Positions 5,501 to 8,500 of a stretch of 64,000 nt of DNA are shown piece after piece. Origin of the DNA: Pecten maximus (taxonomy: Eukaryota); assembly GCF_902652985.1 (NCBI RefSeq), contig NC_047022.1, positions 7,626,001 to 7,690,000 of the forward strand, given 5' to 3'. The notes below the pieces were generated by a model. It made no database searches. It saw only the letters and a program-made list of their open reading frames with translations, and had not been told where the DNA came from. Made by a program: the position numbers and the translations under genes. Positions within the stretch are counted from its first letter, which is position 1. Every line of letters begins with the position of its first letter.

Positions 5501-8500
5501 ACATAGTTCAAATAGTGCCAAAATCAAACTTTTTTCCATATAATTTATGATTTACGATAAATTACTAAAATGCTAAATCTTTTAGTGAAATTTTAAGAGA
5601 AAAGAGAAATCCGGAGTCGGAGAGGTGCAGTCAACACTCGGCTCAGGAGATTCGGTTTTTTCCCTTTGTGATGCAAATTTGCTAACACACCAGTAGCACT
5701 ACTTTGTCCAAAGCCTGAATTTATAGCTTACTTGACCATAGAAATCATATAATAATGGCAAATGTCTTTTACATGTTTTTTTTTACTCAAATTTATAGCA
5801 TAATTCATAAGTGATCTTTAAGGATGAAATGGAAAATATTACCGAAGCATTATGCATGCTTAATTTTTATAATCTAGTATAATTTATGTACAATATTTTG
5901 TAAACTGGAACCACATGTGGTACCTCAATTAAGACTTTGGACAAAGCAGTACATACACCTGTTGTCAAGGGTTTACAAAGACCAAAATTTCTCTCAACCT
6001 CGACCTTGTTTACAAAAGTTCAATGCTTGTAGAGAACTACTTGGAGGTCAAAGTGCTGCCGATTTTATTCAGATTTTATCAAAATGCATTTTCAATATTT
6101 TCAAAACAATAAAAAACTTAAGAGATTTTGTTAGAGGTTTGGAGAAATTTTGGATTGTCTCCCCTTTCCAGTCAGACCCCTTACCTGTTGAGAGCGTTAA
6201 GCATTTCAATGACGACCAGGACGGACAGAGCCATCGTCATGGGTGCTGGATGGTCGAAGACCTTGCAGTCGACACCAAGGAAGCGCTCGTCCTGAGCAAG
6301 ACACTGTGAGTGATGGGTCTATTGAAGAAATACGAACTGTTACCACACAAGCCCAGCACCTTTTATCCAGAATTACACTGGCAAGGCATACATTTGTAAC
6401 ACCACCTGTATCACCACCAGGGGGCACCACAAACTGGTAAATGCCTGGCCAGAGAGCATTCTGGGAAAGACAGCACAAATACAGGAAACACGTGTCAAAA
6501 TGTTTTGTCAAAAAAATGTTTTTATCTTAATTTAATCTGCCAAGACCGCAAGACTAGTTGTTCCTGTGTTTGTGTGTCAGATTTAGCAATCAAGAGTCCA
6601 GCGACTCTTTCCCCTTTGCATGCTCCTTCTAACCATGCAGTGATCATGGTCAAGATCAGTCCAGGCCAGTAGTGACCAGTGGTCAAGCATCCTTTCCCTC
6701 AATATTGTAAAAGAGACATATCAACTATAATCAACTATAATATCCTTACATAAGCTATTAAGAATGTTCTTTACTTATTTCAGAGAAAGATCCAACAACA
6801 AAATTCTTGTAGTCTCTTCCACATTTTGATAAATATGTGGTTTAAAATTAAAAAGAATGTATGAATCCTGATGGAGTCACTTTTTCAGTTTGAGGACTGA
6901 CCGTATTGACCACTGGACTTCTGGCTTAACACGACTTGACCTCAGATCAACACATGGGGTCAAATAGTGACCAATACAAGTAATACCTGTTTAGGGCATT
7001 AAGCATTTCAATGGTGACAAGAACTGACAGAGCCATGGTCATTGGCTCAGGAGCACCGAAGATCTTACAGTCGATTCCAGGGAACATCTTAGGCTCAGCC
7101 AGACACTGCATGTGATGAGTCTGCAATTCAATTCATCAACCAAAGTCTATACATTAACACTCTTCCGTATCATGGCGGAGTTACCTCCCCTCCTGATGAA
7201 CAGGTATACAGAGTAACTTCCCTTGCTGAGGTCATCTGACCAATTAGTACACAGTACCTTAGGGGCAAAACCTTTGCATACATTGCCTATCTTCCCCTTC
7301 ACAGTAACTTTCCTTGCTAAAGTTGAAATATTTCCGAATTTCCAACCCTTTCCCGACATTAAATGCCGAAATCATCTGATATATATCAAAGATACAGTTA
7401 AAGAGAAAAATAAAATATTTCTTTTCTTCTATATCAAAGCAGTTATTTATCTTCCCTCATAGTAAGTCAAGTTTTATAATCCTTGTCTCCACATTACTAC
7501 CATTTCCTCTACTATTTTCCTGTAACCTTCACCTTTCAATCAAAATTGGAAGCACATCCAATCACTGTCTGGCTCGGTCCCAAAAATAACCAGTTGTGCA
7601 AAATATACATTCATATCCTTTCAAAATAATCTCTAATCCTTGAACCAAATTTGTTTTAACTTCAGATTTCAATAGACTTGTTTCCTTGCATCCTGTCCAA
7701 TCAGGTTTTTGGTATTCAGACCTCGTTTTTTTTTGTTTAACGTCCTATTAACAGCCAGGGTCATTTAAGGACGTGCCTGGTTTTGGAGGTGGAGGAAAGC
7801 CGGAGTACACGGCGAACCACCGACCTACGGTCAGTACCAGGCAACTGCCCCACTTGGGTTTCCAACTCGCCACCCAGAGGTGGAGGGCTAGTGATAAAGT
7901 GTCGGACACCTTAACCACTCGGCCACCACGGTATTCAGACAAGCAGAATCATGGTAGGTCAAGCCCACATCTGCAGCCATGTTAGACAGTGTCCATACTT
8001 ACCAACTGGTAGTAGTTCAGTTTGGGTCCTTTGTCGTAAACCATGAACCACCAGGCGGCAGCACCAACAGTTGCACATCCAACGTAACCTGTCGTATTGA
8101 ATTATATACATCTTAACATTATCAAAATCATTCAATAATAAATATTAATTTCACCTAAAGTATAATTTTTATTTTTTTGCATATCTCATGTATTTAAATC
8201 AGAATACCCAATTCAACATTTTCTCTTTTTTATGTTTTTTAATTAACGTTATTACTTTTCGAAAAAGGCCAGCGGATTCAAATTGAGCAAGTTCGACCCT
8301 TTACTATTTACTGTAGTCAGGCTGTTCCATCTAATGTGATAACATATGCGGATAACAACAACCAATCACTGCCATGCTACCAAATGGTAATGCATGACCA
8401 AATGATGTCTAGTTGCTGTGGTCGGACCAAAGTAAATCAGAGGTCGATCATAGTCGACTAGACATGCACATCGTCACTTGTTGTTTCTCTACACATGCGA

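Follow-up and report, generated by a model that had tools for sequence, protein, structure and literature searches.

In the scallop Pecten maximus, the only SERCA locus of the genome with the exon for the distal luminal loop L7-8 and the M8 segment very probably carries that exon as a tandem-duplicated pair, exon A and exon B, from which each mRNA takes either one or the other. The exon pair is ancient and expressed, and both of its copies are constrained. It lies on the minus strand of a 64,000-nt stretch of contig NC_047022.1, here called the window, and all coordinates below are positions in this stretch unless another locus is named.

The host gene is identified as a SERCA-type (P2A) Ca2+-ATPase by its motifs, the tblastn exon map, the best PDB matches and Pfam. 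A motif scan of the minus strand yielded DKTGT at 15786 and TGDG/GVNDAP at 10386/10377, as well as PEGL, and tblastn mapping showed that the P-type ATPase motifs and exons of the gene span from about 28.7 kb to 3.1 kb. When exon A was compared with the PDB, 17 of 17 matches were SERCA1 or SERCA2 (E 3.6e-14), and the exon aligned without gaps to residues 871-914 of rabbit SERCA1a. According to this alignment Cys6, Cys18 and Glu38 of the exon correspond to C876, C888 and E908, and the Thr/Val difference between the exons falls on residue 906. The Glu of the I-E-M motif in M8 is the site-I Ca ligand E908. L7-8 exceeds the other luminal loops of SERCA in size; each exon encodes its distal part with both cysteines, together with M8 and the Ca-site Glu that M8 contains. 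The Pfam family Cation_ATPase_C (PF00689) scored 72 bits, above its cut-off, on the exon at 9060-8857 and fell below the curated cut-off on exon 3243-3127 (E 1.6e-4), while the 44-aa exons A and B searched singly gave no Pfam match.

When exon A was searched in six frames against the entire assembly (918,306,378 bases in 3,983 contigs), exons A and B were the sole matches. As there is no further genomic copy of the exon, no paralogue or second locus is able to supply either mRNA form. Self-comparison of the SERCA gene by tblastx revealed no additional stop-free duplicated exon, and the remaining internal repeats are intronic satellites.

On the gene strand the pair is framed by two constitutive exons. 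The upstream exon (8003-8088, 86 nt), placed by sequence, tblastn and RNA joints, encodes the proximal L7-8, ends in phase 0 and offers a donor common to A and B. It is followed by intron 1 (7121-8002, 882 nt, GT..AG, RNA joint 8003->7120), which holds an interspersed repeat, and then by exon A (6987-7120, 134 nt), which covers residues 871-914 with E-P-K at 879-881 and Thr at 906. Intron 2 (6319-6986, 668 nt, GT..AG) separates A from exon B (6185-6318, 134 nt), which covers the same residues 871-914 with Q-D-E at 879-881 and Val at 906. Both exons are defined by sequence and by RNA joints. Intron 3 (3245-6184, 2940 nt, GT..AG, RNA joint 6185->3244), with a minisatellite inside, leads to the downstream constitutive exon (3127-3244, 118 nt). 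The latter starts at the third base of a Ser codon, encodes the end of M8, a loop and M9, and provides the acceptor common to A and B.

The initial annotation, made from the letters of the window, had described two intact 134-nt exons of the same phase with 12 differing residues, and the codon comparison agrees with it. Both exons are preceded by AG and followed by GT, start in phase 0, leave two bases over and are free of stops. They are identical at 99 of 134 nucleotides (74%) and at 73% of amino acids; 12 of the 44 residues differ (positions 4, 9-12, 14, 16, 20, 22, 23, 25 and 36) and 13 further codons differ synonymously. Eleven of the 12 residue differences lie at 874-895 in the distal L7-8, including the hairpin closed by the cysteine pair. 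The sole difference in M8 is T906 in A versus V906 in B, two residues ahead of the Ca-site Glu, and of the 9 codons that differ in the M8 half (codons 26-44), 8 encode the same residue in both exons, in line with the mostly synonymous M8 changes pointed out before. C876, C888 and E908, the loop cysteines and Ca-site Glu reported as retained, are indeed present in both exons.

The reading frame stays open only when the upstream exon is joined to A and then to the downstream exon, or to B and then to the downstream exon. Inclusion of both exons results in a stop 27 codons into the second of them, and with both skipped the third codon of the exon that follows is a stop, so the claim that both or neither would break the frame holds in the concatenated exons. 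Transcripts with A and B together or with neither would thus carry an early stop and would presumably be removed by NMD, in which case the frame itself would back up exclusivity.

Alternative use of the exons was examined in assembled contigs of the public runs X12 (RNA-Seq), X9, X10 and X7, which come from four different studies. X12, X9 and X10 each contain two 187-nt contigs that hold either exon A or exon B together with 25-28 nt of identical flanking exons, at 100% identity. The four junctions predicted for the pair, 8003->7120, 6987->3244, 8003->6318 and 6185->3244, are all present in these three runs, and at the RNA joints the plus strand reads CT..AC, which corresponds to GT..AG on the gene strand. 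In X7, exon B and 3127-3244 are linked within a 371-nt contig, 6318 is joined to 8003, and no exon A contig was found in this run. Both forms are made and properly spliced, and by taking one or the other of the tandem exons the mRNAs exchange the distal L7-8 and M8, as proposed beforehand. That one of the forms comes from a paralogue or from a duplicate in the assembly is ruled out by the RNA joints, by selection and by the whole-genome search.

Since each contig amounts to roughly one exon, contig depths, in general a poor measure, give a rough A:B ratio here. The depths for A/B were 26.6/64.2, 86.4/85.7, 35.6/35.4 and 0/228, that is, the proportion of A to B varies between RNA samples. Neither the A-B joint 6987->6318 nor the skipping joint 8003->3244 was detected in the contigs of the four runs, and assembled contigs lose rare variants. 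The pair behaves as mutually exclusive as far as contigs go, and rare transcripts with A+B or with both skipped are possible.

Related pairs were sought with a profile of A and B in 1.84 billion representative proteins, which gave 332 matches. Most of these are short ORFs on genomic contigs that run from the acceptor to just beyond the donor, and two sequence classes are evident among the nearest ones. Both exon copies occur together in a single predicted protein of the monogenean flatworm Protopolystoma xenopodis. We compared five loci in which the exons were placed by tblastn: L001 and L002 (ENA assemblies), L003 (P. xenopodis), L004 (Plakobranchus ocellatus) and L005 (Elysia marginata), the last two being sacoglossan gastropods (sea slugs). 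An A-type exon followed by a B-type exon was found in 5 of 5 loci, both of 134 nt with AG/GT and 494-1433 nt apart, and the upstream and downstream exons flank the pair except on the short L003 contig, where neither was found. Including the window, intact A and B are found in six genomes that span bivalve, gastropod and flatworm.

Between orthologous copies pN is 0.07-0.21 while pS is saturated. When the two sea slugs are compared, omega amounts to 0.018 in exon A and 0.038 in exon B, and it ranges from 0.02 to 0.12 wherever dS is measurable. The low pN against saturated pS, together with the low omega, indicates strong purifying selection on both copies, which the initial annotation had suggested from the window and which the orthologues in five other genomes substantiate.

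It could be argued that one of the exons is a non-functional or decaying duplicate, a pseudo-exon included as splicing noise. The run X7 with its missing exon A contig would fit such an explanation, as would the A-B pS of 0.59 in the window, which is lower than the 0.82-0.92 of the other genomes and could hint at a younger copy or at gene conversion. However, A and B are each joined to both neighbors at comparable depth in three studies, both are intact with 134 nt and AG/GT in six genomes, and omega is far under 1 for each copy. We consider a decaying duplicate highly improbable. One exon lacking junctions in every tissue and being absent or decayed in relatives had been named as the observation that would speak against the pair; instead, both exons are spliced and both are intact in the five other genomes.

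Two peculiarities of the other loci were recorded. The B-type exon at L002:10773-10906 ends with A-V-T rather than A-L-N and has A-A-A in place of P-M-T before M8, which makes it the most divergent intact copy found. At L001:13437-14360, six degenerate copies of the downstream constitutive exon follow it head to tail with a period of 139 nt and stops in every copy, an array that constitutes an exon-plus-donor minisatellite.

The age of the duplication was addressed with trees built on the 44 columns of the exon, a quick one of 148 rows and a careful one of 29 rows. In both trees the A copies and the B copies of molluscs fall apart into separate groups. The quick tree supports them with SH-aLRT values of 89 (A group) and 82 (B group), and a branch of the careful tree (78/94) sets off the A copies of molluscs from all other rows. 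Forcing A and B of the window together made the likelihood worse by 17 lnL units with p-AU 0.08, which falls short of a formal rejection of this grouping in the AU test on 44 columns. The separate A and B groups, along with the conserved order of the exons, indicate that the duplication is older than the split of bivalves and gastropods. By established palaeontology, this split dates to the Cambrian or earlier.

Residues 879-881 do not overlap between the classes, reading E-P-(R/K) in 13 distinct A-type and Q-(D/N)-E in 18 distinct B-type sequences; their status as diagnostic is partly circular, since the classes were drawn from trees on the same columns. The class motifs are nonetheless constant within each class across bivalve and gastropod sequences. 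At residue 906, the same A-type sequences have T, V or I, and T does not occur in the B-type ones. C876, C888 and E908 are invariant in 31 of 31 A-type and B-type sequences, and the same is true for most of M8. Judged by the A hairpin and the A-P-E-P segment, which resemble those of other phyla, B looks like the derived copy.

Whether the flatworm pair shares this origin is less clear. The order of its copies matches that in molluscs, with the M-Q-C-L-A-E type first and the S-Q-C-L-A-Q type second, length and phase are equal, and the flatworm B-type copies cluster with mollusc B in the careful tree (91/85). These features are suggestive of common descent, and suggestive only. The flatworm pair may on the other hand be an independent duplication of the same exon, a case of convergence to which we assign slightly less than an even chance. 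A clade of flatworm A and B is not rejected by the AU test (p 0.40, lnL 2.9 worse), both flatworm copies lie near the A group in the 148-row quick tree, and their M8 half is common to both.

As a tentative hypothesis, which we hold to be quite possible and still somewhat short of probable, the A/B pair would have a single origin in Spiralia before the split of molluscs and flatworms. It would have persisted for over half a billion years because the two L7-8 hairpins let a single SERCA gene present two luminal "faces" that differ in Ca2+ handling or in their luminal partners. If this is true, the hairpin E-P-K/R, which is near that of other phyla, and the derived acidic Q-D-E would be the functional counterpart, achieved through exon substitution, of the vertebrate diversification into SERCA1/2/3 and 2a/2b.

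Mechanistically, the exon at 8088-8003 is spliced to either A or B and then to the exon at 3244-3127, giving pumps that differ only in 11 loop residues and in residue 906. In exon clusters of arthropods, mutual exclusivity is known to be imposed by competing RNA pairing between docking sites and selector sequences. Intronic pairing of this kind could also act in the scallop gene. Against it, the inverted repeats listed for the window are short, 70-90% complementary and located in AT-rich sequence. In a search for ungapped complementary stems among introns 1, 2 and 3, the observed score was reached by 36, 60 and 43 of 60 shuffles. This was a crude ungapped stem scan, and RNAduplex-type folding of whole introns gave only giant uninformative duplexes. 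Comparison of the window with the five other loci, which stem from more distant genomes, showed no conserved intronic block, as the blastn matches consist of the exons and a few flanking bases. We therefore regard competing intronic pairing as improbable. Because no such pairing was found, the primary choice between A and B would rather be made by trans-acting splicing regulators.

Functionally, the class switch at 879-881, which involves a proline and a charge reversal within the disulfide loop, and the T906V exchange may tune the behaviour of the pump on its luminal side. The tuned property could be Ca2+ release or affinity, or else the docking of luminal redox or chaperone partners, according to cell type. 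A muscle-versus-housekeeping role and a role in kinetics or redox control were proposed for the A/B choice in the initial annotation, and they keep the rank of a proposal. The two exons might also be exclusive and yet functionally equivalent, the pair being kept by neutral subfunctionalisation of splicing regulation. In line with that, A and B share most of M8 as well as the Ca-site Glu and both cysteines, and in two runs they occur at about 1:1. Yet the class residues at 879-881 and 906 persist through the 13 A-type and 18 B-type distinct sequences, among them those of a bivalve and of gastropods, which would be unexpected were the peptide differences neutral. Functional equivalence is rather unlikely, and we suppose instead that the two pumps may differ in luminal behaviour.

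A single SERCA gene that yields tissue-biased isoforms and serves muscle as well as non-muscle cells is known from invertebrates (PMC3527596; PMC6987452). Such isoforms arise by C-terminal splicing, as in vertebrate SERCA2a/2b, in Artemia and C. elegans and in the three isoforms of Pinctada fucata. The scallop pair likewise derives several pump isoforms from one gene; however, whereas C-terminal splicing swaps or extends the tail via alternative 3' exons, here an internal L7-8/M8 exon is replaced by a homologous copy of equal length. Full-text literature searches returned no report of an internal mutually exclusive SERCA exon pair, and both isoforms may be listed already in automated genome annotations. 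Invertebrate SERCA isoforms described hitherto are C-terminal variants, a picture that the internal exon pair corrects.

The mechanism as such is ordinary. In tandem duplicated exon substitution, adjacent homologous exons of equal length and phase contribute one exon per transcript, and such exons are usually ancient and highly expressed (PMC9741552). Muscle myosin heavy chain genes of scallop and of other metazoans also use clusters of mutually exclusive exons (PMC3912159). Compared with mutually exclusive homologous exons in general, the pair is the same device in a new host gene and in a new protein region. A relative among the pumps is the Na+/K+-ATPase alpha subunit of arthropods (Drosophila Atpalpha, barnacle NAK1), in which a membrane/loop segment is swapped by homologous alternative exons. 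It too is a P2-type ATPase, although the pump subfamily, the segment and the phylum are different. The finding itself has good support and concerns an old pair, located where the function of an intensively studied pump is sensitive.

In SERCA2, Cys875/887 of the TM7-TM8 loop form a redox-regulated luminal pair targeted by ERdj5, SEPN1 and H2O2 (PMC7603117). The homologous cysteine pair is present in A and B. While regulation of L7-8 (L4) in vertebrate SERCA2 is post-translational and acts on one sequence, in the scallop, splicing replaces the residues that lie between the cysteines and those that follow them. With two versions of the L7-8 hairpin and of an M8 residue near the Ca-site Glu, encoded by one gene in at least bivalves and gastropods, the pair represents a natural loop-swap experiment and suggests that tuning takes place at residues 879-881 and 906. 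As one SERCA gene serves the fast striated and the catch muscle of the scallop along with its non-muscle tissues, the pair is a candidate for matching the pump to the tissue.

Several repeats were observed in the introns of the SERCA gene. Intron 1 contains at 7725-7931 an interspersed repeat of about 207 nt whose 3' end, read along the gene strand, is rich in A. At least 4284 first-look candidate copies exist in the scallop's own genome, and 40 copies that were scored are 92-93% identical. This repeat is probably a SINE. RNA contig depth over it reaches 3e4-1.5e5 in 4 of 4 runs. A tRNA or an Rfam family was considered for the huge RNA depth at 7698-8045 and gave no match; its source is the interspersed repeat.

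In intron 3, a minisatellite with a period of 38 nt and internal palindromic arms extends over about 4890-5190, and X7 contains a 255-nt RNA contig at 4713-4967 with a depth of 28. A non-canonical joint 4069/7530 (TC..TT) that skips 3460 nt and has a 20-nt side occurs in low-depth contigs of X9 and X10 and is probably a repeat-mediated or assembly artefact. Elsewhere in the gene, intronic tandem arrays that have no open frame are located at 23136-24164, 17071-17686 and 12496-12712. The first of these has a period of about 155 nt with copies that are 83-97% identical, and the other two have shorter periods.
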